Source: Paragordius varius
Taxonomy: Eukaryota; Animalia; Nematomorpha
Direction: 5' to 3'
Assembly: GCA_964247055.1 (NCBI GenBank)
Contig: OZ176053.1
Location: forward strand, 9,672,001 to 9,736,000
DNA length: 64,000 bases
In this document: piece by piece, positions 3,598 to 41,549 of the stretch
Layout of the letters: each line of letters begins with the position of its first letter
How positions within the stretch are numbered: position 1 is the first letter of the stretch
Notes under the pieces: generated by a model
The model's database searches: none
Told to the model about the DNA's origin: nothing
The model's input: only the letters and a program-made list of their open reading frames with translations
Made by a program: the position numbers and the translations under genes

Positions 3598-3772
3598 CTT
3601 AAGAGTTTTATGAAATCTTTTACTGTAAAGACTCCATTTAAACCCTTTATTTATTATCGGTCAAAAACCCAACCTAGAGCAAACGCAGGTGAGTTGCGCT
3701 GTTTTATACCGTGTATTGCTAATTTATTATTATGCTGAACACATAATGTATAATTTTATTCAAATTACTTAC

Positions 3773-3958
3773 TCTCTGAATCAATCATAATCGGAATGAA
3801 TTTTAATATGAGGCGAACATGGTTATAAAGTTTTTCATGCCAAATTTTTTTAAAGGCAATTCCTGAATCAGACCATACTATAGCATAATTTTTAGCTTCG
3901 AAAGGTCCATAAGAAAATGAATGTATTTCTACTGGATTTCTTTGCACGATATAAGTTC
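3773..3958 (-). CDS. 186-bp internal coding exon (phase 1-1) of an unknown protein, probably a downstream exon of the micro-exon gene
   Basis: tttag acceptor and gtaagt donor. Open frame GTYIVQRNPVEIHSFSYGPFEAKNYAIVWSDSGIAFKKIWHEKLYNHVRLILKFIPIMIDSE. The frame and splice sites are conserved in paralog 32275-32460. Confidence 0.6.
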
Positions 3959-5274
3959 CTAAACACACAAATCATGCAATCACCAATTTTGTTAAAATAT
4001 ATAATTTGATAAAATAAAATTAATATTGTTTAAATAATTTGGATATTTATAAAAAAGGTACAAAATTTGAAAAACGTTTAATAGGAAACCCAGCTTTCAT
4101 TTGAAGTTTTGAAGCAAAAACTCAATTGGTAATTTTTGTCAGTTGTTTTATAACATGTGTATTTTAACTATACTATTTTATTTTTAAAAAAGTTTAATTA
4201 TAATATCAAGTATTCATTTAAATTGTCTGAACTAATCATTTACACTGAAATAAATCTCTTTATGACATCCCATTAAAAATAATTTTGAATGTTTTATAAC
4301 GAAAAGCGATCCGATTATAAAAAGATAATGAAATGAGCAACGTTATTAAAATCAATTATTTTTGCAGTTTAGTGTGAATGATGTTCTTTTTATCATTTTA
4401 TCTAAACTTAAATATTTAATTAATAATATTTATAAAAAAATTTTTTGGTTATTTTATCAAAGTTTAGTTATTTTAAATTTCACACGAAATTGCTGTGAGT
4501 CCTGTTTCACTATATTATCAAAAATTATAAATATATTTATCCAAAAAGGAATGTACCATACAATACAAGGAAATTCGGAGGGCTTTCAAAAAAATAAATT
4601 ATATTTTTTGGAGAAAAGTAACACACTATAAATAATTTGGAACCATGTTATGTAAACTTTTAATTTAACCAATTTAGTCTAAAACCGTATTTAAGAGATA
4701 TGTGGAACCAAAACCAAAAACTATTCCAATCTCAATATCACGTGTGATGACTATATCTTTACATTATAAAATGAATGATTTTAAAATATCCTACCTTTTA
4801 CCAAACATATTAAGAATATAGCGAACAAATAGTACATGATTGATGGGAAATAAAATATTTAATAAAACATTTTTAAAAAAATGTTACAGATATATACCCT
4901 AATTTGTTTATTTACATAAAATTAAAGAGACACAGACATAGATAGATATCCTTCCTTATATGTATATTGTATATTATTAATATAGCATTTTCATGTAGAT
5001 ACTGTAATCCTTTGATTAATTGTTTAAAGGGTGAATGTACATTTAAAATCAAGGTTACTTAATCAGCAAAGATTTAAATAACCGAAGGACCATGTTCATA
5101 AATGTAAAAACAGGTATGAAAAATTCCGAACCATATTAATTTTAACAAGGTTATTTACACAAATTAAATAAGGTGATATTTTATTGACAATAATTATAAT
5201 GCAACACATTTTTATGTATTGTAATGGGCCGGTCGATTGTGTAATGTTGACATAGATACTGATGAAATGTACAT

Positions 5275-10822: not shown

Positions 10823-11628
10823 TATTTATAAGATTGGTATTAAAATTATCCAAAATAATGCAACGAGACTTTATTCGCCAATAGAACCCCGAACCATATT
10901 ATAAAATATGTATAAAACTTTAAATCCAAAATAACAAAAATAATTTCAACCTACTCCGGATTAGAGTTAAAATAGTTAATGGATAAAAAATTTTATTTTC
11001 ATATATTTAAAAATTTGGATTTTTATCTAAGCCTTATGGCCCCATAAAAAATAGCTATATAATATAAAAAGTTTAAGCACTATAGAAACTAAATTAATTT
11101 TTCTTAAACTACAAAGTTAATATTTTCTACATTTTTCGAGGATTATAATTTTATTTATTACCTTTTGAATATACAAAAAAAGGAAATTTGTTTAGTAAAA
11201 AATTACCAATCATCGTTTTTCCATCGTCTTTCAAATATAAATATAATTTTATCAAACATGTAATAATAAAATTTACTAACACAATTCAAAGTAAAAATAT
11301 TCGAAAAAGATATTCATCATATCCGGTTTTATCGTAACATCGCATAATAATAACTTGGACTAATAAATTTCCTTATCGTTTATCATAAAATCTATTTTTT
11401 TGTATATAATAAAAATCGGATAGCTTTTTTAGTTCGAAACGCGACAAACAGCGAATTATGAGTAAAGTTTAACAAAATGATTATTGTTTAATTAAATTTT
11501 GATAACCCGAGTAAATTAAAGTAATGGTTTTATGAAGGAAAATCTAAGCAATTGAGGTATATACTATATAATAAAAATTGGTCAAATTAAGGACACTGTT
11601 AGAAAAATTAATATAGCTATGCTATATA

Positions 11629-12106
11629 TACCATTTGCACTTTAAGATTGGTCCTTTAACATTTCAAATTGGTCCTTAAAATTAGGTTTTAATTTAATTT
11701 ATTTTTTATTTTATTATTTTTTAAACTAATTTACTTTATTTATTATATATTTATTCATTTAAAAATAAAAAATTATATGCAAAAACCACTTTTGTGTTCC
11801 AAACTATTTTTTTTCCCAATTTAACAATTAACTTTTAAATTTTAATAAAAAATTGAATAATAACCCAGAAAACTTGTATATTTTTTAATTACGTGTTAAA
11901 TTTAATATTTAAAAAAAATTAAAAAAGTAAAAAAATCAATAAAAATATACGGTTTCTGAATGATTAAACGTTGATAATGAATTAAAAGTTATGCTAAATA
12001 ATAGAAATAGGTTAAAAACAATAAAATAGATGAATGATATACGATTTGGTTGATAAAAGTTAAAAACAAAACAACTAAGTCAAAAATCAACTTGAAGTGC
12101 AAATGG

Positions 12107-12108
<2 letters not shown>
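11629..12108. mobile_element. MITE with TACCATTTGCACTT termini inserted in TA repeats
   Basis: taccatttgcactttaag ... cttgaagtgcaaatggta, with TA runs on both sides. Sub-terminal ttggtcc motifs are shared with the 3162-3597 core. Confidence 0.75.
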
Positions 12109-12158
<50 letters not shown>

Positions 12159-12263
12159 AGTTTATCAAATTGAGGTCTGGGATCTAAAAACCACCTCAAA
12201 TGGTAAATTAGGACAAAAAATGAAAAGGTAATGAGTGTTTATAAAAAACGCCCTTTTTATTAC

Positions 12264-15200
12264 ATTTAAAACTTGTATATATTTGGTAAATGTTGTCATG
12301 CTGGTGAGTCGATTTCGTTTGTAAAGTTATTGAATAATTCCCTGTTAACAAATCTTTCACAATGAATTGAGGTGTTTCAATCTAAACAGAATAATGAGAT
12401 TAAGATCTTAACTACTTTTCCTGGGTTTTTTGAAATCAGATTTCGTTGCCCATATACATTCATGATTGCTACACCAGTTTCTGTTTGATATTCTTGGGGA
12501 ATTTCATAATTCATCAGGAAATTATTTTGATCCCCGACAGTCTCCATAACCAATTCATACTTGGCCGAAGCATTTAAAGAAATTTTCCGATTAAAACAGT
12601 TACCCTTATTCAGCACTGGAAAAAATTGTCATTTGTAAATGCGATATAATATATTTAAAAGAATTAATAAAAAGACTTATTATAAAATTTGCTTTAACCA
12701 ATGGTTGGAATATCAATTTTGATGAAAATACAATCATCAGTTTTGTTAATGATAGTGGCTTTAACTCCGTCATCTGTAAAAAAGATTTGAGGTGGATCAC
12801 TACTGACTATATTAAGTAAAACATTGAAAATTATAATTAAAAAGATAAAACAAAATGGTAAGCTAATATATATATACGAACAACATTTTTTTAAACGACT
12901 TTTCTGGGTTTGAAACATACACTTAAATGTGTATTTGACCAGATTGTAAAAATAATTTTCATATTTTAGTGGCTTTTATAATTATAATTTTTATATTCCC
13001 ATACAAAAATATTTAAAAATACCTCCTGGCTCTGATGGTTCTATAGGGACTTCTATAACAAAGCTCGTACCTATAATTTAAACTTTGAGATTTACCGTCG
13101 TCCCTCTCTAAAGTACAAATCAATATTAATTATATAGCCATTTTCACCAATATAAATATCATTATAATTCTACCTTCAGTTTGATGAATAATTATGTTAT
13201 GGTTGTCAGCTAAATGTATAAAGAATGCGACGATTATGCAGGAAAATTTAAATCAAATATTTTAATTATGTTTCAAACTTATATACCAGATAAAATTGCT
13301 TCTAGAGCGGCGAAAACTATTCCTAGACATGCTAAAATATAAAGAATAATTTTAACAATGGAACACAAAATATGGATTTAAAGTCAACCAAATATATATT
13401 TTATATTATAAGTACTGATGAGCGTGTCAAGAGAAGAAATTCTAACCATTTCATTTAATGAATTTAAAGTAGTAGCAATTTTAAAAGGGTTTATGTTTCC
13501 GCTAAAAGCTAAAATGACCCTTTGTCAATGGGTTATACTAATCGACAAAAGTTAGGTGTGTGTGTGTGCAAAATATTTTAAATATTTGGGGTTTTATATT
13601 TTAGTATGATTGACAAAATGGATTCTTCTTTAATTTATATACCACTATCTATATTAAATGATAAACGATCTAATTATAGAATTTCGAAATAAACTTGTTT
13701 AACATATACTGGTAAAAATAGGCGATTATTTATATAATTGTGGACAATACCCGACCTTTTTCTTAAGAAGCGGGGTGAATGGTCATATACTAGATAAACG
13801 ACTGTCAATGCATAAATTTTTTTAAAATACATCCCGTTAAAAAATTTATACCCCGTAAAAATTACATCAGAATAAAATTATGACAAAACTGAATTTCATA
13901 TAACAAATACATATCAATATTTTAGAACTAAGGACAACATGAGATATGGTGAAAGGCATGGTACAAATAGGTTTCGTTTTCATTTCTTGAATTTACAGAT
14001 TCTGGGGGGGGAGGCTGGAAGCGGTTTTATTATAAAAATGAAAAGATATGGATTTATTATTCTTATTTATATTATCAGTGCCAAATTTAGGGTCAAAAGG
14101 TAGTTTTTTCTAATTTTCGTAATTCATATTAATTATAAAAATACTAACCCTAAATTTGGCACGCTATGATTATATATATATATATATAACTTACTTGCAA
14201 TTGCTGCAAATAATATGCCTAAAAATTAAAATTAGAATTAACTTCCTCCGAAGAAAACACCTAATATAGAGAAATATGTTTATATTTATATATAATTATA
14301 ATAAATTTTCAGTTATAAAACATACCCACTTTTCCTAAAAATTTATATAGGAAGGAAGAAATGATTTTATAAATTGTTTTGGTTGCATAAAAAATTTATT
14401 CTTACCCAGTGTAAATAATTTGGCTAAAACATTAATATTATGAAAAATATTACCAGCTATAACCGAGAGAACTGTGGACACAAGAGCTGTAACCCCTGCC
14501 GAACCAACTCCTATATAAAAATATGAATTATAAATGAAGCGGTATTGAATAACTTATCACACAATCGTAAAAATGTTTATTAATATTAAAAAAATAATAT
14601 CCAAAAATTTTTAGTAAGCGAAAACCATCGCGTCTTTTTAACAAGCAAATTAAGTTTTGCTTTGATTATGTAAAAATATATCATTTTCCCTTCAAATGTG
14701 TCCTTTTACATATCAAGTTTGTCCCTCGGTAAAGGAAAAACTTGAAATGTAAAAAACTTGAGAGTTCAAATGGTACATAAAAAACTGAACAAATAAGTGA
14801 AATCATTGCTATAATAGTGTTTGTTATAATAATAAACCAACAAATAATTCAAGGGGTTCTTTTTTATCAATAGTTCAAAATAAAAGAACAAAGGAATAAT
14901 CAAAACAAATGAAGTGTCAAAGACTTTGGATTGCATTTGATACTTAGAATGTTGCTTGCAATCATTACCGATTAGTAGCGATTGGCTTAATTTATTTGAT
15001 TCTTTTGGGTAAAAATTTATTATAAAGGTGTTCGTCCCTTCTTTATTCAAAAGAGATTGTGACATATATTAACAGGCCACATGGGAGAGGGGCCGCGGTA
15101 AAAAAGGCCCCCAATGTGTTACTCAAATTAAAATTCCTTTACTGTTTTTGGAACCCTCCGAGGCATTATGTGCGGCCAGCTTTTTTAAATCCATAATTTG

Positions 15201-18200
15201 CGAAAAGCTTGCAAAATTTTAATAAATTTGGTTTTTATGAAACAAGTTTTTTCTTGAATAAGCCTTATTAATTGGCAACAAACTAGAAAAAAATTTATAT
15301 TGTGTTTGCATTCTTCACTCTTATGTTTAATAATAAATTATTTATGAATGTCCATATATATTTCATAGCGGTCCGCCAGTTTGTCAAAAATGCGACCCGC
15401 GAAGCCATTTGTCTTGGACACCCCTAGTCAAAAGCATCTTTTTAACGCCATTATTACTACTTATTAATGAGTTTTGTCGAATGTATATCTATAGATATGA
15501 ACTTTTAACTATCATCCTGTTGACATTGTTGACCATCAAAGTATATATACTTAATTCAACTTTGTATGCTCTTGTTGCCATGTATATTCACATTATGATA
15601 TTGATTTAAAGTTAGATACTTTTGGTATATTAAAAAATTATGGTTGATTTCGTAATTGCTGAAAGCTTTTAATTTTTTAAACTGGTATGTTATACGGCTG
15701 GCCATATATTACATATTATTATGATTATTGTATTTTTGGAAACTATAAGAGAAGATGTATTAGAGGAATGGCATGGTCTTGAACAGTCAAATACAATTAC
15801 GGCCCAATAACGAATCAAAAGTTTTGATCTTGTTAATAGTAATTCGCAAAATGATTATTTAAAAATTTACATTACAAAAAATTAGGTTTTGTACCATTTT
15901 TATTAATCATGTTGAAAAATTCACCCATTTATAAAAGCAATCACAATTACGCTGAGCTTATATTAACCGATCAGAGCCAACCCTATGGATGATGTTTTGA
16001 CTTTTGGATTTTAAACTATAACATTATTTTGATCAGCATCCATAAATAGATGCTTTAATTTGTTTGGAAGCTCTGGTCGGTATCATCGACTTAAAATCCA
16101 AGCATCTTCTGTAATGCTTTCCAGATAGTGATATTAAAAATTTAAAAGTGTTTGGAATTTTAAACATCAGTTTTGAAATCAAGAATTTTCCAGATATGTG
16201 ACAACACAACAAATAATTAGGACGATTACTTATTTTTAATGATTATAAGGAACATATCATATCATAAATGATGTATTCTATAAAATAACCTCAATGTTTT
16301 TATGTCACAAAATATAAATGTGGAAATAATTTTCCAATCTTCTACCTACATAATAAATTTTAAGGACGAAATACATTTAAATGGTATTTAAAAGATATTT
16401 AGGAAGTATATTCAATAAAAAATATGTCATATTGATGAGCAAAAAAATTTATCGATTTACCTGCAGGGTTTGGGCCTTTTGGACCATTTGGCTTTGGGTT
16501 TGGCTTTTGTCCTCTGTCATTGGGAAACCGATTTCTCCTTTCAACCTTATTGTCTAATTTATATAAAAGAAATAATTTACCATGGTCTTCTTGTTGTGGC
16601 TCGTCTAAATTTGTTAAAGTTTAATAGAAATTTAGCATTATAAATCTACCCATATCAACACATAAAAATATTTTATTTAGGATATTTCAACGGTAATATA
16701 ATCTTGATAAATGTATCGGTTTTCGTAGTGCTTTTGGTTTTGGGTTTTACAAGACATTTTAAGAAAAATAATTGTACTTTTATAGTAATTGCTCCATATA
16801 TCGCAAATTTGGCGCATATTTTGCTAATAAAGATATTTTAATAAAAGCTAGATGCTTTATTTCAAAATATCTTGCAAAAATATATTATAATGTCCAATGA
16901 ATGAACAAATATTATATATAATTTTCATATTGGATGTGGGCTCCAAAAGTTTTAATACCCCGGTAAAATGGTTAGTTTTATTATGGAGCCCACATTAAAT
17001 TAAAATTTAAAATAAATAGTGTTTTGTTTTTAGTAATAGTTTATGATATATTTTCATAACATATTTTGAAATGAAGCTTTTAGTTTTCACCAAAAAAATT
17101 ATTAAGCATTATGTGGACTAATTTTCTAATTTTTTAGTATGGATTAGAAGAAAATGTTAATATTTTACCATACATTTACCAATCATTATTTTGTGGCTTT
17201 GTTCGCAAACAATTGATTGAACTTTTTATATTTTTTAAAAATCAAGATAATTAATGTGTGGGATTATCATTGGTCTGGTGTGTGTTTTATATTGAATTGG
17301 AAGGCACTATTATAATTTGGTAACTTTCAAATAATTTAAAAATTAGCAAAAAGTTTTAAAATATATTTGTGTATATTTTATAATGGGTAAGATCATTGAC
17401 AGATTAAATGATCTCATACAACCCATTTTCGGCACACTTTGGGCCTATCATTTTGGAAAAATACTTTAGAAACTATAATTTTTAATCTTTTCCTTATATT
17501 TAAACTAAGTTTTATTTCTGGCTTGGTTGGTTTTTATATAAAACGGTGGCAAACCATTTGCTTGTGTAATATAAGGCAAGAATTTAGATAACCACAATCA
17601 TTTATAAACGCGCAAAAAAATATAATTTTAGCCAAATATTTAATTCCTGGAAATATTCCCTAATCTTAGTTCATTAAATTAATAAATTATTTAATTAAAA
17701 AAATAATCTTACGTGGTGAATATGCATTTATTTTTAGCTTTAAAAATTTTATTGATATTGTTCATATATTGTAGCATAATTACAAAATAACAATATTAGT
17801 CCATGGATAAATACAAATGTGTTTTGTTTAAAAATTTTCAATCCATACCTTCTTCCCCGGGAACATCTTCATTGGGGCCGTTTTCTGGTTCCTGATCTAC
17901 AGTAAAATTTACTCAGAAATAATTTTAATAGAAAATGAACTTTTAATAAATAGGATTTAAAGCAGGGGTATTCAACATGCGGCCCGCAAAAAACTTGGCA
18001 ATTCATAATTTGCAATGCTCACAAAATCTTGGCAAAATTAATATTTATTATACAAATTTTTTGAACAAGGCCATTCAATTGGCAACAAATTTAAACTAAC
18101 GTTATGTTGTGTTTGGGTTTTACAGTCGTATGTTTAAAATCTAATAAAATATTATTAAATGTCCATATATTTTGCGCATGCGGTCCATCAGCTTTTTGTA

Positions 18201-21200
18201 ATGAAAAATGAGACCCGAGAAGCCATTTGAGTTGGACACCCCTGATTTAAAGGTTTTGGGGAATTTTTAGTAAGCGCATACAATTTATTTTTTATAAAAT
18301 CATATTAACCTTTTCCTGTGTCAGATTCTTCGTCGGAAGTCCTATCATCGTCAGCATTCTGATTTGGTGCGTCATTTTCTACTTCTGGATCCTCATTCAC
18401 GTTCATTACGTGTTCTAAAACCTCTTCCTGGGGATTGTTTTCAGCCATTTGGTCCAACTCTTGGGATTTTATTATGGTATGCAAAATATTTATTTTTTGA
18501 GTAATTTGCTTAAAATTTATTAGTATTACTATCAAATGAAAGAGATAGTAACACATAAAGTTTTTCCCTAAATATAGGGGTGAAACTAACTATTATAATT
18601 ATTTGGTACAATTTTTTATTAATTCATATTTATCAAGTTATTTTTCATATCTTTTTATAACAGGAATAGGTCAAAGCTGTGACGGTGATGGTTTCATTAT
18701 AAAAAATGTTAATGTGATTTTTCCTTTTAACATGAATCAAAATATTATATTTAACGTTAAGGGCAGGCTTATTTGGTGTTTGCTGCTTATTGATAAAATA
18801 ATAATTACGTAATATTTATAAATTTACCCCCGTAGAGTCCTTGGAGAGCTTAATAATATATTAATTTTTTAAACATATATAAACAAGAGAAATATTTATA
18901 AGGATTGATTTTTAAATAGTGTTAATATTTTAAGAATATAATGGTATTTTTGGGGACTTTTTAATAGAGAATAAGCTTTCCTAATTGGCAAAATAAGTCT
19001 AAGTATAAGGAAAATAAGTAAAAAACTAAAATAAACAGCTGATCAATATTGATTACCATTTTACTTATGATATACTATTCATGATAATTTAGGCACGTAA
19101 AAAATTTACAATACAGGGAAATTCAATTTTACATGTAAAACTCAAAAAATTCGCATATCGTTGAATTCTGCCATCTTTTGTATATTCTCGAATTAATGTA
19201 TCCTCTATTTTAAAGAACGTGACAGTAACTAAACCTATATAATTATATAGGTTTGGCTAAAATACATTTGAAATATAATTTAAAGATATATTTTAGCTAC
19301 ATCAAAATTGATTATGCACAAAATTTTAAGCATAACAGTCAGTATTCACAAATAAATATTCTAATGAAACATATATTCTGATACAATATGTAAGAGATTC
19401 TCATGCTTTTAAGTTTTACGCGTGTTATAAAAAAATTATATTCACTTTTATGGTAATTGCTCCATATTTGAAGATGACAAAATTTGCCCAAATTTTGTTA
19501 TAAAATTTTTTTTCTGAAGGCTAAATGTCCAAAAACTATCATTCAAACATATCATAAACTACAATAAAAAGCATACAATATTTATAAGATTTTAAATTTT
19601 GAGTGTTGATCTCCGAAAATTTTGACTATTCCGACCCGTCTAAATGAGCAAGTTCTTTTAAAATAAAAGCGAAACATTTTTTAAAAATATGCTAAATTTT
19701 GAAAAAAATTCAGAAAAAAGTCGATATTGTGCTTACTTAGAGCATTTTGGTATAAATATTTTTTTATATAGTTCGATGATGCTGAGCACTTCTATCACCT
19801 CAGGATTTTTTGGAGCATCGTTTGTTTAATTTAAATAAATTGTAAAAAAAACATTCTATACTTAAAATAAATTTGAAGACCCACGAATATTTTTATCATA
19901 TTTTGGTTCAGAATCATCAAAAGAAAAATTGTTTTTATAATATCTTAAAGCGATATTATACCGTTTTCATCACGCATCAAAATAGTATGTTTAAAGATTC
20001 CGCTTAAAATGCAATTTTCAAAAAAAAATTGAAAATTGCGAATCTCGGAATTTTTGCTTTTCTTAGCCCATGTTAGATGGGGGCAAATTTGAAACTTTAA
20101 GAGCCCACATCTAAAATTAAAAATTTGATAAAAATATTGTTAAGCTTTTTATTCGTAGTATATGATATATTTAATAGATAATTTTCGGAAGTATTTAGCT
20201 TTAAAAAAGAATCATCTTCGGATATGGAGCTGTTACCACAAAATTGGTAGTGACTTTCTTATATCGCTAGTTAACCCCCAAAACTAAAAGGACCGTGAGA
20301 ATCCAGATGATATTTTTTATATTCTAGAATTTGTGCGCAATGTATAACTTTTATAAATTTTGACCATAGTATTTATTATTTTAAATAAAGTGTTTTAACT
20401 TTAACACACCTACAAATATTAGAAATATATAGATAGGCTTACTTAAAATCAAATTCAAATATTTAATAGTCACATGTTTGGCTAATTTCAATTTTGTTGT
20501 AATTAGATTTCGCAACAGTTATTTTTGATATTACATTTCTACCAATTTAAGTTGATATACATAATTCAAACAAAATACGATATAAATCTATGACAGATAA
20601 CATTTTTTTTAAATCCCATTTAAGACTTTATGACCTTTTGGGTAGTTTTATATCCCAGGGGGATTTGAAACGATATCTTGAAAATATTAAACATATTCCG
20701 ATATAAATATGCTTTCTTTACCTTTTAAAACTCATGCTTAATAAAAAAATATTGTTAAAAATGTAAAATCCTCCTCACACTTTTTTGTCGCCACTTTTTT
20801 CTATAAATTATTTTAAATCGCTAATACAGCAGGCAAATAAATATATATTATATTAAGATAATGTTATTAATAAACAGTAAGCTTTCAGACATTTTACCAG
20901 CAAAATAATATATATTTATTTTAAAATCAGCGTTTATTTCAATCATGTTTGGAGCTGTCCTAAATTTAAACTCTGGTTACAAAGTAACAGCGGTTTATTT
21001 ACAAGATTGACCTCTGGGATGTAAAACTAACTTAAGATCTCAAAAGGTGAGAAAATCATGGTGCTAATATACTTTGTCAAATCCAATTTTGGTCGTATTG
21101 GTTTGAATTTATCTTAATAATTATAACATAAAAAACGCATCCTTCATAATTTTTCTGTTTTGTTATTTTATGATAGGAAACAAAGATAATTTTTTAACTT

Positions 21201-23068
21201 ATTTTATATATTTATTTTTCTTTTGCAAATGCAAATTAGATTTGAAATCAATTTAAACCACTAATTACAATCTTTGATTTCCCATTATCATATTATATCG
21301 TTTGAAAACGGACATTCATGCAAATCTCACAAAAAAATAAAATTTAAAATGACATTTCCGCATTTGAAACAAATACTTTAACGCATAATATTGACAGTAT
21401 CACGGCTATCATATGCCGATGCCAAAGAATAACCTTTTAATATTCCAATTAAAGAATATAAAATATGGTAATATCTTAATTTAAATAAATCAAAAATTAT
21501 TTACAAAGAGAATATACATACCTGCTTCTAATTGTGGGTCTGGATCTATTATGTGTTAAAATATATACGAATACTTGGTAATTGTTCTGGCCATTGCTCC
21601 ATTTCAACATCTATACAATAGTTTTGGATTAAATCAAAACAGGATACCCATTTCTGGGGCCTCGACAAATTCTATAAATAAAAAAGATATATGCATACAT
21701 TATCTTAAGTGTTTTTATACCCTTTCAACATGCAAATACCCTCAAAAAACGCTTCTTTGTCCAAATTTTAATTAAAAGAATATTTCCAAAAATAATTTGT
21801 TCATGCCATAATCTCACACATATTTAAATTCTTATCGCGTAACGTCGGCTTATTTGCGTTTTATTTAATAAACCTATCCCATCACCAACTGATTTACCTT
21901 GATTCGGATTGAGTTGTTCTACACATAAAAATTAAAATTAGAATTACAAGTAAAATTGGTAACAAAATTAATAATTTTATACAAATTTGATTATTTATTT
22001 TTACCCCATTCTTGTGGCGGTTCTTCAAAGACCTCATCAATTTCTCCGTTTTGTATAGGGCCATGAGCCCCCAAATCCCATTGGGCTAACTCTACATCCA
22101 CTTCTGCATCGTCGGCAATATCTAAAATCAAATTTTGTGGCTGATAAAATTTATTTAAATCCATATATTTATCTTACCTCTCTATACTTATAATTTTTTA
22201 TCCGAACAATTTTTAAATTTTATGCTGTTCACGAACATGTAAATAAATTGACAAAAATTTTTAATATTTTGACACAAAATAATGAAAAGTATGGCTCACC
22301 CATGAGTTCTCCGTTCCCATTTTCATAAACCTCATCCACAAACGCTATTTGTGATAAAACAATTATATTATGCAATGTAAACCCAAAGGAAATAACTGAA
22401 AAATGTTTAATTAATTTTATTAAAAATACAATTAATTTTAATTTATGGAAAGTAATTGGTTATTCTAATTAAAATAAATATTTGATTTACGATATTGACT
22501 GATTTTTAATTTAGCCATTTATGGCCATACAAAAGATTGGTATAAAACAATAGTTTTTAAATATCTATCCCTATATTTTTACTATAAGATTATTGACACA
22601 AACGAATGTAGTGCGATTTAAAGAATTAATATATTAGACTAATAATAAAAAATACACGTTATATACAAGGAGTCAATATCGACTTAAGGATAAATTACAC
22701 GTCTAAATACACGATTTTTGGACCTCAATTTTAATCTAGTAAACTTTTTTTAAACCAAGAAAAAAATTAATTGCAAAACTAAATATGCACTTTTTTAGGT
22801 GGTTTAAATATAATACCATCAATTTTTAAAATTTATTGTTAAGGATGGTTATGAAGCTTAATATAATTAACCAATTATATTTACCATATTTAACACAGAT
22901 ATATATTTGAATAAAGTTTTTAAATTGAAATGACGGATGTGATGGTATAATACCATTTTATCCATATTGGATACTAATATATTATATTAAAAACAATATT
23001 TCGAAGAAGTAATTAAAGTTTATGTAAGTTATAAATAATAAATTTTCCACCAGGAGGTAAGTCTAAAA

Positions 23069-23104
<36 letters not shown>

Positions 23105-24797
23105 AGTATTAGTTGCAATAGAAAAATAAATCATAGGAATCCTAGTGTGCATTTTTGGATGGAAAAACTCCCCAGCATCCATAAAAATCTGAGGTCATCC
23201 ATATTAACACCTTAATATTTTCGGGGTATCCCAGAGCGATATCCGAACTTTAGCCCTTTAGGCGCATTATACAAAAAATTTTAAATGTAAAATTGTAAAA
23301 AAATAGTCATCTCAAACTTTTTTGCCGTCATTTTTTATAAATTTTTTAAATTGCTAAAGCAAAAGTACATATTTGTATATATGGTTATAAAACGCAAACA
23401 ATAACTTTAAAAAGCTTTCAGGCTATATTTTAAGAGGCAAAACTTGATGTACTTTTTTAATATCTGTTCATTTCGATCGTATTTTAGCGCTCTAATTTCA
23501 GACTCTAGCTCAAGAAGTCAAAAATATAAGCTTTTTCATCCAATACATGACAACAATGTATGATTATTAAATTTTAACTAAAATAACCACACTAAATTGA
23601 GATCGGATATAAAACTATCCCAATATGACTAGGACGTGTTAAGAAAAACTAAATAATTTGTTATTATACATTGCGTCCGAAATCGGGAAGTATAAATGTA
23701 ACCTGATGAAATATGTATGTTCTGATATGAAAATATTTCTATATCATGGTGATTGATTTTGGCCCTTATGAGTGATTTAAAGCTACCTACTTTGTCGTAG
23801 GTGCTCTTATCAGAAAATGGAAAAGTTTTTGCACATTTTTAGGTAAAATTTTTTTAATAAAACTGTCCTTCATTCCAAAAAATATCACTAAAATATATAA
23901 TAAACATATAAAGTGCCAAACAATATTTTCAATTTTTTTTTAAAAAATGCATAATTTTTAGAAAAATTTTATTGAAGCGTAGCATAATGAAAACGCTCTA
24001 AGATATCAAACACTTTTTCTATTAAATTAATGATGCTCAACCTATCGTTCCAGAATTATAATTTAAGGTTCCTTTGTTTTAAAAATGTGGTTAATATTTG
24101 TAATAAACCCAATTCTTATATAACATAAATTTAAAGATGAACAAATATCACTGAAAATTTTGAGGTTATGGAAACGTTCAGCATCAAATTATATAGAAAT
24201 TGTGTTTTATAATATCCAAAAGCGTTTTACTGTTTCCATTCAAAATAGTATAAATATGCTTCAACAAAATTTTGCAAAAAAATCAAATTATTGAAAACAT
24301 TTTTTTTGATACCAAAATTTATATGTTTAAAATTTTTATCGCGCAATCCCGGTTTTGCGTTTATTAGAACTAGCCCATATTAGAAGAGTGAAAAAATATG
24401 GGACTTTTGGAGCCATCCATAAATTTAGAATTTTTGAAAATCTTGTTTTGCTTTTTATATGTAGTTTGTGATATATTTTGGAATGAAGCACCTAGCTTCA
24501 CCAAAAATATTTTACTTGAAAATGTGCGAAATTTTGCCATTATCTGATGTGGAGCAGTTACCACAAAAATGAAACTTTCATAAATCACTCGCAGTGCCAC
24601 CAAAAGCACCCTGATAATCCTAATATATTTTTCTATCAGATACATATTTAATCAGATTATTTTTATATCCCGCGATTTTGTATACAGTATATATATAACA
24701 ATTTTTTTAAAGTTCAAGAAAATTTGAAATGTACTCTTCACTATATACATATCGCCCGTCACTCCTAAGCGCGTACCTTCTCACAAAGAGTACTTAG

Positions 24798-24839
<42 letters not shown>

Positions 24840-25754
24840 ATCAGTATAAGGGTTTTAAAATATAAATGAATGAAGCATCAGTTTTATATAAAGCTTATAT
24901 ATTATTGTATTATAGCTTCATGTTTGTATTAAAAAGGTGAGATTAACCTCGATACTTGTAATGTAAAAATAAAATATAAGTGTTTTAATAAAATATATAA
25001 AAAAATGATCGGGTTAATCGGTGTTTTTATTACAAAAAGTTAAAGATAGTGATTTATTATAAAACTGAGTTTAAGTATATTTTTTGACATTCAAGCCCCA
25101 TTATATTTCACAAATTTACATGTAAAATTTTTGGTTCCAAAAATCGAGCCCTATGGATGCATTATTAGCTATTGATTTGCAAGGGTAGCCTTGTTTTATA
25201 AATTGTAAAAAAAACTTCCGACATAATTTAAATTTTGAAGGCTGATATTATTATACCAAAACATCAAAATTAGAGAAACCACATTTTTACCTTAAATCTG
25301 GCACGTTATGTATATCATGAGTGAGTGATAGTAAATTAAAGAGTGTTTCCATTTTATTAAATAATTCGTCAACAAAAATGACTGAAACTTTAGTGTAAAT
25401 GTGATATGTTACATTGAAATACAATCAAATTCACTCACTCAATTCACTAGGAATTAGTATTTGAAGGATTTTGTGCCACGAAATTTATCCCATAATGTTT
25501 TACGGTTTTATTATAGCGTTTGGTGGCTGCCACATATCGTTTATGAGGTATGTGATAAGTGATGGCCAATCCAGTCATATCATTGATATTTTTTTTGCCT
25601 AAGAAGTAGTATATTAGTAAATATTAAAACAGTTTAATTTATTTTAACAATACAAAAGGTAAACATTTACCTGGAGTATAAAACTTGAAGACATAATTTT
25701 TTCGGTTGTTCCTTTTTGTCACCTTCTGCCAGACCAACGATGTACTGATATTGT
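12264..25754 (-). CDS. Unknown micro-exon gene: acidic low-complexity region, hydrophobic segment, then a globular domain with N-glycosylation sequons (putative type II membrane protein); 5' end unresolved
   Basis: Exons (high to low): 25671-25754, 22300-22344, 22005-22121, 21898-21918, 21648-21671, 21575-21610, 21522-21545, 18828-18848, 18310-18459, 17849-17896, 16581-16604, 16461-16553, 14454-14510, 14406-14423, 14195-14218, 13023-13070, 12699-12806, 12416-12615, 12264-12381. All are AG/GT bounded and join into one open frame (...AFVDEVYENGNGELMDIADDAEVDVELAQW...KPNGPKGPNPAGVGSAGVTALVSTVLSVIAAKLFTLGILFAAIASTSFVIEVPIEP...). No family was recognised. Confidence 0.7.
15160..15426. mobile_element. 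Degenerate hAT MITE (same family as 17963-18244)
   Basis: atgtgcggccagc ... gacccgcgaagccatttgtcttggacacccct; left TIR damaged. Confidence 0.6.
17963..18244. mobile_element. hAT-family MITE with 8-bp TSD
   Basis: TIRs CAGGGGTATTCAAC / GTTGGACACCCCTG and a perfect 8-bp TSD ATTTAAAG (17955-17962 and 18245-18252). Confidence 0.9.
19451..20238. mobile_element. MITE with ~25-bp TIRs (TGGTAA..GCTCCATAT..GAAGAT); partial relatives at ~16783-17140 and ~23960-24562
   Basis: tggtaattgctccatatttgaagat vs atcttcggatatggagctgttacca. Shared internal motifs such as gagcccacat. Superfamily not determined. Confidence 0.65.
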
Positions 25755-27683
25755 CTAAAATGTATATTTTTATATTAACCTCTTACAATGGTATAATTAA
25801 TTTAGCTTTTATGAAATAATAATACACTACAATAAAGTTATACAAATATTAATTTGCTCTCATGCAAAAATTAACGAGACATCGGATGAAAATATTCCAT
25901 TTTTATTTAGCCTATATATCTATGTAGATTATATTACGGTTTGAATTAAAATTTTAATTCATAAAGAGTGTCAGCCTTTTTATATTAAGAAATAAAATGA
26001 TTAAAAACACGGTCGACTAGGGCTTATTATGTATCTTGAAAATGTGTTTCTTAGCTACAAATTAAAAACAAATTTTAACTAAATTATATCATTTAAGAAT
26101 TAAAGAAGTTTGAACTATTAGATTAACATTAAATGAAAAGTTGGGGCAATTGATTTTTGAAGTTTCTAAAATTAGTGATTTATCCAAATTTATGCGCTGT
26201 TGGGGCAGATTCCTTAGAATCTATAGATTGCTTTTTGACAAAGTTTACTTTTGTTACAACAGTGCTTTGTTCCAAAGTTACAAGATTATTTATATATATC
26301 AAACGTTACTTCGGATGACAAAAGTTTTGGCTATGGCTTTGACCTTTTCTACGTGGTCAATTGTTTCTAATAATAATTATGTAATATATATGGATTTATT
26401 TAGATAAAAAACTGTACCGAGTGTTTTTTGTTTTTTGAAAAAGTTTTAAGAACAGGGAATCGTATAAATATTCATAATCTAACTCTAAATAAATTCAATT
26501 TGATTAGGATTTATTTTACTATAATTTCATGTCGCGTTAAAAATAATTATTGCAATATGTATGAATAATATTGTTAAAAAATTAGGAGAAGTTAATTTTA
26601 TTGGGGTCGTTGGAAACTTTAGGCCTTTCGATATAAAATATTCAAAAAATATGGAAGGAATTATAACCAAGGCAAAAGTTTGCCCTTATATAACATTAAT
26701 GAACCGAGATATAAATTTAAATTACTTAAGAATATTTATTTTAAGGTACCAAAGGTTGGTCAACATGACATGTGTGCATTAGCTAAATATAAAAATAATA
26801 CATAATAAACCACTTATGTTTCTATCAATGCTGTAATTTAAATAAAAATAACTTTAGCATTAAAATTAAATAAACACGTATTTGCAATTTTATAATAAAA
26901 ATGGCGTCGAAATAGTTTATTTAGAAACTTTTTAATAACTAAAATTTGGATATTTCGGCTTATTTAAGTAATTTTTATTGGGATAGAACGATAAATATAA
27001 ATCGGACTGTTTCTTTTAGTAGTTTTAAAAAATATCAACCTAAATATATTCTGGGGTATTTAGGTACCTTAATTTGAATCAAAGTGTAAATTAAAATTTT
27101 TCTAAAATAATAACACAGTTTTAGTGAATTCGTATTTTTTTAAAAACTCTATGTTAAAGGGGTCGAAGATGAACACGTTAGTTTATCTAAATAAGTGGGC
27201 TGGATACTATGATCGTACTTTTTTATAAATAAATAATTATTATTACTGAATTTAAATAAGCATATACGTTTTCCAGGATCGTTCAGAATTAATATTATGT
27301 ATGCTTATTAGTTTTATAAAACTACAGTTTTATATTTGAAAATAAAAAAATATTTGCTAGCAAATGTTTCGGATGAAACTTTCACAAATTCATTTGATAG
27401 AGGCTAAAATAAATTATACTTTTTCATTTGTTCCAAATCAATATACACTCTTTGTAATTAGCATTTTAGAGTTTTAAACTTCATAAATATCTGTCAGCAA
27501 AATGTTTACAAAAAAATTAACTTATCTATTCGGGAGAACTAATCAAAAATTGGAATGTTGACAATAAAAAAACATTGCAAATTACCTTGTAAATTGGGAA
27601 ACTTCTTTGTTTTATTGAATTGAACGGTTTTTGACTTTTGAGGAAGCGCGGCAAACATTTTATATAGTATGGCTTAATGTAAA

Positions 27684-30249: not shown

Positions 30250-30713
30250 CTTCCAGGTTCTTAAACACTTCAAGTTGTTCCTTCAACTGTCTCTCTAGTA
30301 TGTTTTGAACTTTATCAATTAAACCATTTATTTATCTTTTTTATCTAAACTTTTAATATAATATCAACCTTTTTATTCAAAACCGTATATCTTCATAAAT
30401 TTATGGAAAAAAAATAGAATTTCTAGTAATTGAAACATTAAGTTTCCTGGGATATTTATTATAATTTTTAAATTATAAGTCAATAATTTTGTTGATTTGG
30501 AAAAAATTTTTGTATTAAAAAAAATAAATAAATATATAATAAATAAAAATTAAGTTATACTTGGAAAAATTATGGTTAAATACAACTAAAAAAATAAAAG
30601 TTGTTCATGGACCAACTTGAAGTGTTGAAGGACACTCTTGAAGTACTTAATAAGAATTTTATGAAAGTTTTTACCGTAAAGACTCCATTTAAACTCTTTA
30701 TTTATTATCGGTC

Positions 30714-32152
30714 TGTTATGCAAATCTGAAAGATATACTTTATTTTTATATCATAATTTTCTGTTACATGCAAATGTGAAGTACATACCTTGGTTATATA
30801 TCATAACTTTCACCCTTATTTGAATTATATTATTTTTTATATTTTTTGTGTTATATGTAAATATAGAACCTTTGTTACTTGAAATTTTATTGATATAATG
30901 CAAATCATGGACAATCAAAATTGCTATAATACACCCTAAAAAAACAAATAAATGCAATTCATTTCACATTTCTTATATTATCTCTTTATCTTAAAAGATA
31001 ACAACTGGTGGCAATTCGAGTATCGAACTAATCTAACAACTAATCTAACACAACAGTGGAACCTCCGGGTTCCAAACTCGGATGGGGAGTTAGAGTCCAA
31101 AGTTCCACAACCATGACAATGTCAATTGCTAATATTACCAGCATGTCCAGTAAAAAATTTAATGATAATACCAATTAGAACAATGGTAATAATTTTTCGA
31201 TCACAACAATCAACCTCTGACACATTCGCGCAAGGGTTATGGGAGTGTTCATGGGCCAAACAAATGCCCCGCCTGGAACCGCAATTGCAAATGCGGAAAA
31301 CCCAACCACTTCGCTAATGTAGATCAAACTGCCAAAAAAATGTTCAACCGCCATTGCACTGAAAGCGAACGGGCTAATAATCTATAGAAACTTTGAAATC
31401 ATTATCAACAAATGGCTGGGGAGGACTCCCACATCATTCAACAATTGATGGATGGGTAAGTAAGATTGGCGCGGACAAACTTGTGATAAGATTGATCGGT
31501 AAGACGCCTACCTCCCCAGGCCGAGTTAAAGCTACACCTCGACGATTTCAACAATAAGAGGATGTGTCAGTTACAAAAGGACACTGTTTAGATTCGTTAC
31601 AGCGCCCATAGTATATCAGTACGCCTGGACCAGTTTCAAAGGAATGGTCTAGGGTGGCAGGCAGAGATTAAATGAAACACGTCGACACACATAACATAGA
31701 ATGTTATCTTTCAAACTAAGATTCGTCGACACACCCACGACACCGGTCACTCAAACAATAGTAATGATAATGATCACGACAATAACACTAATATTAATGG
31801 TAACATTATTAATAATAATAACATAATAGCAATAATGACAATATCAATGAAAATCCGCACGAGCGTCGTTACCCCGAGAGAATTCGGCGGAAGCCGGTCG
31901 GGTTCTCTTAAGGGGGAAGTGATGTTATGCAAATCTGAAAGATATACTTTATTTTTATATCATAATTTTCTGTTACATGCAAATGTGAAGTACATACCTT
32001 GGTTATATATCATAACTTTCACCCTTATTTGAATTGTATTATTTTCTATATTTTTTGTACAACTAAATTTACTATACAAACCCTAAAAAAACCAAATAAT
32101 AAATTCAGTTCATTTCACATTTCTTTTCTTATCTCATCTTTAAAAGATAACA
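30714..32152 (+). mobile_element. Internally deleted Gypsy-type LTR retrotransposon, 1439 bp
   Basis: LTRs 30714-31003 and 31923-32152 (TGTTA...TAACA). 5-bp TSD CGGTC, with the empty site at ~3658-3662. PBS-like TGGTGGCA at 31006. PPT aagggggaagtga. Gag knuckle remnant HGPNKCPAWNRNCKCGKPNHFAN, RT-like RFVTAP..FQR and pol tail RRYPERIRRKP. Confidence 0.93.
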
Positions 32153-32274
32153 CGGTCAAAAACCCAACCTAGAGAAAACGCAAATTTTGGTGAGTTGCGC
32201 TGTTTTATTGTATTGCTAACTTATTTTTACGTTGAACCCTTGATATATATGGTTGTATTCATGAAATTACTTAC

Positions 32275-32460
32275 TCTCTGAATCAACCAACATTGGAGTG
32301 AATTTTAACATAAGGCGAACATGGTTATAAAGGTTTTCGCGCCAATTTTTTTTGAAGGCAATTCCTGGATCAGACCACACTATAGCATAATTTTTAGCTT
32401 CGAAAGATCCATAAGAAAATGAATATATATCTACTGGACTTCGTTGTACGATATCAGTTC
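32275..32460 (-). CDS. Paralogous 186-bp coding exon (copy B)
   Basis: Intact splice sites and open frame GTDIVQRSPVDIYSFSYGSFEAKNYAIVWSDPGIAFKKNWRENLYNHVRLMLKFTPMLVDSE. The gene context is unclear and it may be a pseudogenic partial duplicate. Confidence 0.5.
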
Positions 32461-33215
32461 CTAAACACACATATTATACAATAATCGAATTTATTTGATG
32501 AAATAGCATTAATATTGTTTAAATAATTTGGATATTTATAAAAAAAGGTAGAAAATATGAAAAATGTTAACTAGATAAACCAACTTTCTTTTGAAGTTTT
32601 GAAGCAAAAGCTCAATTGTAAATTTTGTCAGTTGTTTTATAAGATGTTCATTTATCCCAAATAATATTATATTCTTTTTAAAGAAGCTAGAGTATAAAAA
32701 ATCAATCGTAATTTTTATTATCGTTTATATGTTACACTGAATATTATTTTTAAACATAAATCTTTTTATATCCCATTAAAAATAATATGTTTTGACAAAA
32801 AGCAATTCGATCATAAAAAGATAAAAAAGGAACCACTTTATAAAAATCGGTTAAAATTAGAGTAAAGTTTGAATGATTTTAACCTTATTATCATTCTATA
32901 TAAACTATTGAATTGATTTTATTTATAAAAAAATATTTTGGTTATTTTAAAATTTTTTATAAAATTCATTAAAGTTTAATTATTTTAAATTTCAAACGAT
33001 GTTGCTCTGACTATCTTGTTTCACTATTTTAAAAAAATATCAATATATTTATCCAAAAAATGCACCATAAAATACAGGAATTGGTTCAGGCCAAATTTGG
33101 AACAATTTCTAAAAATCAATTATATTTTTTAGAGAAAAGTAGCACACTATAAATAATTTAGGAAAAAACCATGTTATGTACAAAAAAACTTATAATTAAA
33201 ACTATTTAGTCTAAA

Positions 33216-33705
33216 TTGAGTGGGTAACGACGAGAGTTTGTAATGTAATGAAGTTAGAATCGTCGTAAAATAACGCAAAATTAAAAATATAATTTATTAA
33301 TTCTCAAATTTTCGCCATAGGCATCATCAGGAGATTAGTTAAGAAAAATATATATAATATAAGAAAATAAAAATTAAATTAAAAAAATGAATAAAATCAT
33401 GGTTGATATTACTTATATAGGAAAAAAAAATCACAAAATAACCGTTAGTGGACAAAGGAAAGAAAGATCACAAAGAAAACCGTTGTGATGTAAAAAACCA
33501 AATGTGTATTTTTTTTTCACAAAAATTAATTGTAATGCTATAAATAAAATAATAATTTAACATGAAACAATGTAAGCGTAAAATTATTAAAATTTAAGTA
33601 ATATCTACACTATAAAATGGTTTGTCATTAAAAATTCGATAATTTTTTATAAATGATTTAGTTTCAGAATTTATAGCTTTCCTTTCTTCACGGCGATTAA
33701 GCAAA
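33216..33705. mobile_element. 490-bp unclassified insertion with 6-bp direct repeat TCTAAA
   Basis: Absent from copy A (~4678). tctaaa flanks both sides (33210-33215 and 33706-33711). No clear TIRs. Confidence 0.65.
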
Positions 33706-34330
33706 TCTAAAACCTTAATTTTAGAGATATATGGAACCAAAAACTATTCCAGTCTCATTCTCTAGTGGAATGAAATATTTTTACATTATAAAATGAATGA
33801 TTTAAAAATATCCTACCTTTTACCAAACATATTAAGAATAGAGCGAACAAATAATACATGATTGCTAGGAAGTAGAATAATTAAATTTAAAAAAATGTTA
33901 CGAATTTATACCCTAATTTGTTTAATTTACATTTAATTAAAGAGACACATACACTTCATTGTTATATAATATATTAAAGTAGCATTATTTGGTGTGAATT
34001 TCATGTTGATACTGCAATCCATAATAGATTAATTCTCTAAGAGGTGTGCGTGTGTAAATTTTAAATTAAGGTTATTTAATCATTAAATATTTAAATAACC
34101 AAAGGACCATGCTCCTAAATGTAAAAACGGGTTCGGAAAATTTCGACCCATATTAATTTTAACAAGGTTATTGACATAAAAATTAAATAAGGTGATACTT
34201 TATTGACAGTAATTAATATAATGCAACACATTTGTATGCATTTTAATGGGTCGGTCGTTTGTGTTATGTTGACATAGATACTGATGAAATATACATTATA
34301 TGCCGTAATATGTATAGACAGCTATTTATA

Positions 34331-35186: not shown

Positions 35187-38100
35187 CTATTCACTTTGAA
35201 TTGGTTCATGTTTTGGATATTTTTTCCTAATTTTCTTTGGCGGTGGTACAACTGCATTCAACTAAAGTAATCATAATTTCATTAATGTAATAAATTAGGG
35301 AAAGTGTAAATGTATACAGTATGATATTAATGGTTGCTTATTTCACACCATAGTTGGTCAACTTGCAACACAATAGTGTATGAAAAAAACAAAAAAATGT
35401 TTAATAAACAATTTTGTCCTTTACATTACTTTGTGTATTTTATTCAATATTTTGTTGTTTTTTTCTATACAGTTCTGTGTTGCAAATTGCCCAGCTATAG
35501 TGTGAAATAAGCAACCATAAAAATGCATACTGTACATGAATATATGCATACCGTAAAATGATTATCTATATTATGCAAAGCTTTTTTGAGCACATGATCA
35601 TTTGCACTAAATACCGGCTTAATATCTTCTCTTAACACAATATCATCCAAGTCTATATCATTTTTCTAGTATATTTTCAAATAAGAATAAGTATAATCAT
35701 TAAAATATACATGAAAAGAATTTTAAATTTAATTCGATATAAACTTTTTGGTGGTGACTAGTTGTCTTCAAATAGGATATTGCTCTTTGACTTAAGGCAT
35801 TTATCAGGCGATTAAAATATGGGTTAGCGGTATATTTTGGTTTCAATTTTTCATTTTGTTCCGCCGAAATTTCTGTAGCCAAGTCATGTTTAACATCTTC
35901 CAATTGACTCACTTCTGGCCTGAAGAGATATCATACAATATATTAGGATGAAAATCAGTTGGAACAACCCCGTTTCATCGTATTAAATATACATTTCTCA
36001 TTTAAATTTATTTATGCAGTAAAAACTGAAAATAATAACTCTAATTTTAAAAAAAGGTGTAAAAATATGAATACATACATTAAATCCATTGCATCGATTA
36101 AATCATCTATCGCTTGTAATTGTTCAGGAGTCTCCAATTGTCGCGGTATTTCGTGGGCCGTTGTATCTTTCCCAAAATAGGTGTTTCGACCCGAACGATA
36201 CAAATTTGGGAAACGATAGAAACGAATGTCTTCGAGAAAAGGAAGAACATTCAATATTAGGCACTAATAACAGGTATATATTGGTGACTTTACGATAAAA
36301 CTTATAGAAATTTGGTTAAAAATTATATAAGAAGCCTTGACTTAAGAAGATAAGACATTTGGATTATAAAGTTAACCATATATAACAATTATAATTTTTA
36401 TAAAGCATAGTTTATGAGAAAATGGCAAACTTCTAGCACATAATCTAACAAACCTACCAATATAAGATGACAAACAAGAAAGATTTAAAAATATGATTGT
36501 AAAAATTTGACATTAGTTTACTGTGCCTAAAATTTATACATATTTAAGGATTAGCTTTTCAAAATTTTTATCTATAACTATCGATTTAAAAACAAAATAT
36601 AGAAAAACAAACCCGATAATTGAATTTAACCCGGGGTCTAAGACAAACAATCTTAGGTTGATTGGCTTGAGCTCCCCTTGTTGTGGAAATGTAACGTGCT
36701 ATACCAACCATATCTAATTCATACATGCCATAAACTAAGGCTTCAAATGCACGAGCCAAAGATAGTGCATCTATATTTAAAAAACGAAATGGTTCGATTG
36801 TTTATATAATGCTAAAACGTATTGTAAGAATTCAAAAAAAATGCAAAGCATTTAAAACAAAAACACATTGTTTCAACTAAATTATTTCGTAATATGGTCA
36901 AAATTATTTTATGCAATACAAAAGAAAATATATTTTCTTTTTAACAAATGACTACGCTAGTATAATATTACCATTTTCATCGTCAATATCATCCATTTCC
37001 TCATCGCTTTTCTTCCTTTTACCTGTGGTTGATTTCTTCTTTTTCTTTAAAGTTTTATCGTCCCAAAAGAATTCAATACATCCATCTCCTAAAAATTTGT
37101 TTGGATGGATCTAATTATATATATATAATTTAATTGTTATTATATAACATATGCATTAAGCCAACACTTGAAACATAATAGTATTTATTAAAACTATTTT
37201 GTGAGAGGCGTGATTATGTCAGAATCACAAAATCGCATAATTTTAAAACAGTGTCCACCCAAGGCAGGTGAGTGTAAAAGATTTTAATAAACAATAGAAT
37301 TTTCTCTGATGAAATAGATTCTAAACTGTAGGCAGATAGATTAATAGAGTAAAAACCGTGGCAACAAAAATTTAGGGGATATGAAACATCTTTATATTAT
37401 AGAATTTTTTGATAGTACATAAAACCCAATAATATTAAACAAATGAAATAATTATGCTGTTTTTATTTGAATGTACAGAATTTTTTTATTTAATTACATA
37501 AGTTTTATCATTTAAATGCCATAGAAAATTTTCAATATAGTACACAGAGAGTTTTGGTAAAACCGAAAACACCATTAACTAAATTTACGTGCTAACAGAT
37601 CTTTAAATTCTAAACCCTTCAAATCAAGGCAAACAAATAAACTTTTGGAGCGTAAAAAACTTTGTTGATACAGGATTGTGATAATTATTTGGCAGTAATA
37701 CTAAATTATTTATGTCAAAAACATTTTGAGATGTGCCACAAAATTAAAAAATACATTTTCCGATTTTGTGAATCCAATAATAATTAGGCCTTTTTCTCGA
37801 CTCCCTTCCGTATCTTGATTCGTTGGTTCCAAATTTTGGGCTGCCAGCTCGTCCTCTTTCGAAAAGGGTACTAGCGTATTCCCATACTTATATGCTAAAA
37901 AAAGTCAATAAATATATATAAAAATTTATCTTTACCAAAATCAACTTTAAAGTCCAATCCAATCTTAAATGAAACATAATTTGGTATGAGAGTTTTACAA
38001 AAGGATCCTACTTTTTTAGCCACACCAATTAATTTGCATAATGTAAAATTAACCTTTTACGTAATCTGGTTTGAATTTAAGATCAGTATATTCATATTCT

Positions 38101-41455: not shown

Positions 41456-41549
41456 TTTAAAAATTCAAAAAAAAATAAAATAAGATTTATCATGCACTTT
41501 TAAAACAACATTTGTGCACTTGTTCAAGCTAAACTTCAACTTGGTTTGT
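41456..41549. promoter_or_regulatory. Putative bidirectional promoter and 5' UTRs between Ku80 and importin-alpha
   Basis: Only 94 bp separate the divergent start codons (41455 minus, 41550 plus). Promoter function is inferred. Confidence 0.6.

Follow-up and report, generated by a model that had tools for sequence, protein, structure and literature searches.

The stretch of DNA analysed here, a window of 64,000 nucleotides from the nematomorph Paragordius varius (contig OZ176053.1, here C4, positions 9672001-9736000 of a 110.6-Mb, 44-contig assembly), carries on its minus strand a large gene that has no annotation. Coordinates below are window positions unless a contig is named. It is a protein-coding gene of ~27 exons, running ~21.6 kb from 33859 to ~12208, and one of at least 16 members of a lineage-specific family. 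The DNA of the window is very AT-rich, with 21-34% GC per 2-kb window, and apart from fragments of intron-rich genes it contains no long open reading frames (ORFs). A preliminary description of the locus had listed seventeen consecutive exons, each of a length divisible by three (3n) and bounded on both sides by phase-1 introns (phase 1-1), and had likened them to the micro-exon genes (MEGs) of schistosomes.

Exon structure and encoded protein

A script seeking AG-exon-GT segments of the listed lengths, open in the phase-1 frame of the minus strand, recovered all seventeen in order from 25754 to 12699, each with its AG/GT flanks and an open frame. The seventeen are real, but they are not consecutive, as four further phase 1-1 exons of 9, 45, 36 and 12 nt are interspersed among them. 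That more exons might exist had been suspected, and the four bear this out; the suspected region at ~21370-21430, however, is conserved yet offers no open 3n AG..GT solution, and the one at ~11210-11360 lies downstream of the stop codon. The listed chain also omitted a family exon, N4 (25439-25598), together with the portion of the gene reaching upstream to 33859. The gene starts ~8 kb above the first listed exon, with a signal-peptide exon and two more exons. Once the four added exons are included, no stop interrupts the chain of 22 exons between 25754 and 12416, even at the codons split by junctions. Acceptors are mostly T-rich and end in TAG, donors read GTAA or GTAT after an exon-final G, and all introns are in phase 1 except the last.

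Six introns are only 25-37 nt long: 12382-12415 (34 nt), 13071-13095 (25 nt), 14424-14453 (30 nt), 16554-16580 (27 nt), 21546-21574 (29 nt) and 21611-21647 (37 nt). They have GT..AG ends and lie beside micro-exons, in a gene whose other introns reach 5.9 kb. Those of 25, 29, 34 and 37 nt are not multiples of three, so that their removal is needed to keep the frame.

Read exon by exon, the coding sequence of ~1.85 kb specifies a protein of ~610 aa that is probably secreted or membrane-anchored, judging from its predicted sequence features; secretion and topology, like the spacer function considered below, are what we infer from this reading. The order of regions matches the one first proposed, namely an acidic Pro/Gln-rich part, a basic Pro-rich part, a hydrophobic segment and a C-terminal domain. 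The signal exon (33817-33859, 43 nt) supplies the ATG and a 14-residue hydrophobic, signal-peptide-like segment, beginning with Met and 12 hydrophobic residues followed by V-K-G, and ends in phase 1. It was looked for close upstream of exon N3, where it was not found, and it was located 8 kb further up. An N-terminal domain of ~160 aa follows, encoded by four exons. N1 (32275-32460, 186 nt) provides its first part and has strongly conserved positions, N2 (26310-26366, 57 nt) has AG/GT flanks, and N3 (25671-25754, 84 nt), the first exon of the earlier list, begins with an N-x-S/T sequon that is present in all copies. The fourth, N4, is broken in this copy, where it measures 160 nt and runs into a TAG before its donor. 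In the family, N1 to N4 are all phase 1-1.

Beyond this domain lies a fast-evolving linker of ~190 aa, acidic and rich in Pro, Gln, Glu and Asn, with a basic Pro-rich piece at its end. Its acidic region opens with phase 1-1 exons of 45 nt (22300-22344), 117 nt (22005-22121), 21 nt (21898-21918), 24 nt (21648-21671), 36 nt (21575-21610) and 24 nt (21522-21545). An uncertain 21-nt exon with an AAG acceptor (18828-18848) comes next, and then a series that turns from acidic to basic and Pro-rich, with exons of 150 nt (18310-18459), 48 nt (17849-17896), 24 nt (16581-16604) and 93 nt (16461-16553). A Gly/Ala/Ser-rich hydrophobic stretch of ~50 aa, interrupted by G-K-V-G, is spread over five or six micro-exons and is probably, on its predicted character, a membrane hairpin. 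These are exons of 57 nt (14454-14510), 18 nt (14406-14423), 9 nt (14326-14334), 24 nt (14195-14218) and 45 nt (13287-13331), the 9-nt and 45-nt ones being additions in phase 1-1, with a possible sixth at 14243-14260. A short juxtamembrane piece, made of two added phase 1-1 exons of 36 nt (13174-13209) and 12 nt (13096-13107) and a listed one of 48 nt (13023-13070), leads into the C-terminal domain. This domain of ~160 aa, probably beta-rich, has conserved cysteines and a mostly conserved N-x-S/T sequon, and is encoded by exons of 108 nt (12699-12806, phase 1-1) and 200 nt (12416-12615, phase 1 to 0) and by a last exon running from 12381 to the stop at 12208-12210, though its 3' end beyond the conserved Cys is uncertain. 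Should the two domains carry glycans and disulphide bonds, they would both face outward, which is consistent with a two-helix hairpin.

A tandem twin and a wider family

The gene, here copy A, has a close twin, copy B. Positions 10959-27389 of the window are collinear with C4:9653682-9672000, 28.3-28.5 kb upstream, and 32200-34250 likewise pairs with 3700-5250, so that the entire gene is contained in a tandem segmental duplication of ~28.5 kb. The 5' end of copy B falls inside the window, with its signal exon at 4795-4837 and its N1 at 3773-3958, both on the minus strand; the rest lies upstream of the window. Intron identity between the copies is ~86%, and their neutral divergence is ~14%.

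The pairwise alignment of A and B served for tests of splice sites and frames, of gaps and of decoys. AG, GT, frame and 3n length are kept in copy B for 20 of the 21 symmetric exons, and in the remaining one the acceptor is shifted by 3 nt; among intronic decoys, that is, open AG..3n..GT segments, 33 of 184 (18%) pass the same test. The bias expected from picking exons by eye, a caveat of the preliminary description, is answered by this comparison, as the pattern goes far beyond chance. The 1376 nt of exon contain a single gap event, a 9-nt in-frame deletion in copy B within the acidic and basic Pro-rich exons (16461-18459), against 294 events in 10.3 kb of aligned intron. At the rate seen in introns, the exons should have ~26 gaps that break the frame; among short intron gaps, 73 of 271 are multiples of three. 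The ratio of nonsynonymous to synonymous change (dN/dS) falls from 0.77 for the acidic part to 0.43 for the hydrophobic part and 0.38 for the C-terminal domain, and in places the acidic exons are less conserved between the copies than the introns that flank them. The signal exon, from its ATG to the final G and the GTAGGA donor, is kept in both copies.

Family loci number at least 16 in the genome, with ~11-12 on contig C5 (9.69-10.30 Mb), three on C4 (A, B and the paralog P4), one on C2 and one on C6. Comparison among distant paralogs on C4 (P4), C5 (P5) and C2 (P2) revealed the upstream exons, both the signal exon and N1 to N4. N1 matches 14-15 loci, each followed downstream by a same-strand locus for the C-terminal domain, with the pairs 15-40 kb apart across the family, and in its alignment some G, I, W, L, Y, P and E columns are invariant. 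Each of the three C-terminal exons matches 12-16 loci. Upstream of their N1, P4 and P5 have homologous Met-hydrophobic exons with a phase-1 donor. N2 was aligned by eye to its counterparts in P4, P5 and P2 (..V[RK].I.KTF.I[KR]), and N3 has 44% identity in P4 and P5, with the identical 84-nt length and phase in P4. Further down, the end of the 117-nt exon (..PP.[ED]W), the PNE[DN]VP.EE motif of the 48-nt exon at 17849-17896 and the TS[FY][VI]I..P motif of the juxtamembrane 48-nt exon all recur in P4, P5, P2 and a C5 paralog, and the hydrophobic exons of P4 include 18, 24 and 45 nt, as in copy A, with similar peptides. A Val codon (GTN) directly follows the 200-nt exon in 13 of the 13 paralogs that reach its end, which places a phase-0 donor there and a 34-nt intron in copy A. 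In these distant relatives, at 30-45% identity, the exons keep the same order and, where checked, the same sizes (N3 and the 18-, 24- and 45-nt hydrophobic exons). Exons that recur in paralogs whose introns no longer align must be real.

Exon structure nevertheless drifts among family members. P4 (C4:9622646-9622861) and P2 (C2:9776431-9776658) join the counterparts of the juxtamembrane 48-nt exon and the 108-nt exon through ~16 extra conserved codons in one open frame, where copy A has a 216-nt intron; the difference is one of intron gain, loss or intronisation within the family. P2 and P5 seem to have the first hydrophobic exon fused to the Pro-rich exon. Recent tandem duplication as a source of the micro-exons found no support, since the gene's introns contain no tandem arrays, and neither exon copies nor exon-edge arrays were found in introns.

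Searches with ORF pieces and single exons found no recognisable conserved family. Pfam gave no match for ten ORF pieces or for 14 N1 exons, profile searches of PDB with single-exon alignments (N1 and the C-terminal exons) returned nothing credible, and the ESM Atlas held no usable match to the 200-nt exon. A profile of this one exon, run against 1.84 billion proteins, found only 5 weak multi-stretch matches; four of these, when scanned with Pfam, are repeat proteins whose domains are of bacterial Ig-like, collagen or FN3 type. Such matches hint at beta-sandwich-like strands and not at homology. The preliminary description had proposed an unannotated, lineage-specific family encoding a membrane or secreted protein, and the family, the probable secretion or membrane anchoring and the lack of relatives in these searches agree with it.

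Other features of the window are noted for completeness. The intronic block 18804-19149, which does not recur elsewhere in the genome, shows 92% identity between the copies against the 86% intron average; the uncertain 21-nt exon sits in this 350-nt block, which otherwise has no clear coding solution and may be a regulatory element or contain unrecognised exons. A 90-nt intronic stretch, 21335-21424, flagged in the preliminary description, is 98% identical between the copies and fits no open 3n AG..GT exon. The introns at 15070-15434 and 17960-18252 contain two copies, diverged to 71-84% identity, of a ~300-nt dispersed element; the element ends in ..TTGGACACCCCT, has more copies in the paralog region and is probably a miniature inverted-repeat transposable element (MITE). 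The 5.9-kb intron that separates N1 from N2 has two direct repeats (30589-30963 and 31777-32082), with nearly identical segments in their translations, on either side of ~1 kb; they look like the termini of a retroelement insertion. Scanning the window with Rfam and for tRNA genes gave no hits. Just upstream of the gene, on the minus strand at 35400-41300, are ORF pieces that, reading them by eye, we take to belong to a gene for a Ku70/Ku80-type DNA-end-binding protein. On the plus strand at 41514-50141 lies what is presumably an importin-alpha-like gene, also read by eye, with a basic IBB-type N-terminal piece (41514-41849) and a C-terminal piece (49752-50141).

The broken exon N4 and competing explanations

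Several observations temper the reading of the locus as a gene for a two-domain surface protein. The exon junctions are predictions from genomic sequence; N2 is the weakest of the N-terminal exons, and the 21-nt exon at 18828-18848 is the weakest of the seventeen, without counterparts in the distant paralogs. In those paralogs the hydrophobic stretch has a weaker hydrophobic character, and it could be one helix or not membrane-embedded at all, and AlphaFold returned for the 200-nt exon alone a low-confidence single beta hairpin (pLDDT 59). Finally, with N4 broken, copy A may not make the full protein. Measured to the common GTGAGT donor, N4 is 160 nt long in copy A, 165 nt, open and in phase 1-1 in copy B, and 156 nt and open in P4. 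A 5-nt deletion at ~25467 places the TAG before the donor in copy A, and no phase-1 donor lies upstream of that stop. As a result, the only open path through copy A skips N4, which is just what the chain of the preliminary description does. Copy A is thus either a young pseudogene or dependent on N4 skipping. Between A and B the 150 nt at 25468-25617 are 100% identical; this stretch stops precisely at the 5-nt indel and resembles a gene-conversion tract.

The most sceptical account of these data would be that there is no gene, only exons picked by eye from AT-rich DNA full of short open AG..GT segments. The 184 decoys, 33 of them conserved, do mean that single very short exons are not provable one by one. 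For the gene as a whole this account is already refuted by the decoy comparison, by the gap and dN/dS statistics, which indicate selection, and by exon-level homology in paralogs with introns beyond alignment, and we give it practically no credence. A recently inactivated pseudogene of a functional family, with copy B as the intact gene, deserves far more weight, even if we would not put it at even odds. The lesion in N4 speaks for it, as does the size of the loss: N4 contributes ~50 aa of a conserved domain, and skipping it would probably unfold that domain. Yet at ~14% neutral divergence the ~25 other exons of copy A are still open, their splice sites are intact and none has a gap that shifts the frame, so that any inactivation must be recent, and an in-frame product lacking N4 may still be made. 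That the other exons are intact leaves three options for N4, namely that the lesion is recent, that the exon is skipped or that the assembly is in error at that point.

It is tempting to speculate, with the preliminary description, that the gene is a diversity generator like a MEG, its micro-exons skipped combinatorially to yield a pool of variant surface or secreted proteins from each gene. Any subset of the symmetric exons can indeed be dropped without a frameshift, as had been claimed, and also without a stop at the new junction, because every exon ends in G or A. The linker evolves fast, its exons in places showing less conservation than the intron next to them, the gene encodes a signal peptide, and copy A itself stays in frame only in the N4-skipping transcript. 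Nonetheless, exons no longer than 36 nt contribute only ~13% of the coding sequence, the hydrophobic anchor and the two conserved globular domains set the protein apart from MEG products, the splice sites of the micro-exons look strong and uniform, and the symmetry is equally expected from a class 1-1 design that involves no skipping (PMC8001218). We therefore regard a diversity generator as unlikely. The wider proposal, a genome-wide system of phase-1 micro-exon genes outside flatworms and hemipterans, in which alternative splicing of the linker would vary spacer length or epitopes, seems to us improbable to the same degree. Were it true, copy A, viable only with N4 skipped, would be a natural example. 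The twins A and B, one of them with a broken symmetric exon, offer a ready-made test of frame-neutral exon skipping.

Class 1-1 design, micro-exon genes and bicycle genes

The reading that we prefer, and consider probable, is that the gene is a case of class 1-1, small-exon design in an orphan family. Under the class 1-1 rule of Patthy, extracellular proteins of animals have a phase-1 intron after the signal peptide followed by symmetric phase-1 modules (PMC8001218). Phase-1 introns are favoured where codons beginning with G are common, with an excess at signal peptides and Gly-rich linkers (PMC8001218). Here the signal exon ends in phase 1, everything from N1 through the 108-nt exon is phase 1-1, and of the 25 phase-1 junctions in the model with N4 included, 18 split a codon for Asp, Glu, Gly or Ala. 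The all-phase-1 pattern can be read as the extreme form of this design, one that lets exons appear, vanish, fuse or change size during evolution while the frame stays intact, changes of the kind that the family displays. The linker might act as a variable spacer between two binding domains at the cell surface or in the matrix. Like class 1-1 proteins, the product is probably extracellular, with beta-rich domains and a linker in which most split codons specify Gly, Asp, Glu or Ala. In those proteins, however, an exon or set of exons usually corresponds to a known mobile domain such as Ig, FN3 or EGF, whereas the domains of this gene, searched as single exons, gave no match to a known family and have phase-1 introns within them, its linker comes in pieces down to 9-24 nt, and some of its introns are no longer than 25-37 nt.

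The resemblance to MEGs is real but partial. In MEGs most of the coding region lies in very small exons and the products reach at most 189 aa (PMC4350168; 10.1101/2023.06.21.545858); the definition that we used is of symmetric exons of 6-81 bp, typically 15 bp, that make up most of the coding region. In common with them, the gene has a signal-peptide exon followed by runs of very short 3n exons, introns from tens of bases to kilobases, fast-evolving encoded sequence, a tandem family and a history of being overlooked by automatic annotation. On the other hand, exons of 36 nt or less, though 11 of the ~27, account for just 249 of ~1850 nt; the 84-200-nt exons encode both domains, 3n symmetry holds for all but the last two exons, and the product, with its two conserved domains and its hydrophobic stretch of ~50 aa, has ~610 aa. 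The schistosome MEG membership suggested by the preliminary description is consequently not supported. Nor did the profile of the 200-nt exon, the one exon searched against the 1.84 billion proteins, find any sequence similarity to MEGs. The closest analogue in the MEG world is VAL-6, described as combining an ordinary gene with a MEG-like portion (PMC4350168).

The bicycle and megacycle genes of aphids offer a second comparison. Their internal exons are small and numerous and nearly always begin at codon position 2; they also encode a signal peptide, and they form lineage-specific, rapidly evolving families that are recognisable from gene structure rather than from sequence (10.1101/2021.09.24.461719). 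The gene described here shares the start of all internal exons at codon position 2, the signal peptide and the lineage-specific, rapidly evolving family. It differs in its globular N- and C-terminal domains and its hydrophobic segment and in having no known link to a salivary gland or a host, and the translations of its exons contain no C-Y-C, the mark of paired CYC motifs.

A whole family of at least 16 large genes thus escapes ORF-based or standard gene finding in this genome, and no member of it came up when the profile of the 200-nt exon was run against the 1.84 billion predicted proteins. The gene adds a composite case to the short list of small-exon genes that keep to one phase, alongside MEGs and bicycle genes, with the micro-exon run forming only the linker of what would be a two-domain surface protein. 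This composite structure favours the idea that such architectures arise from ordinary class 1-1 design and not from a dedicated machine for variation.

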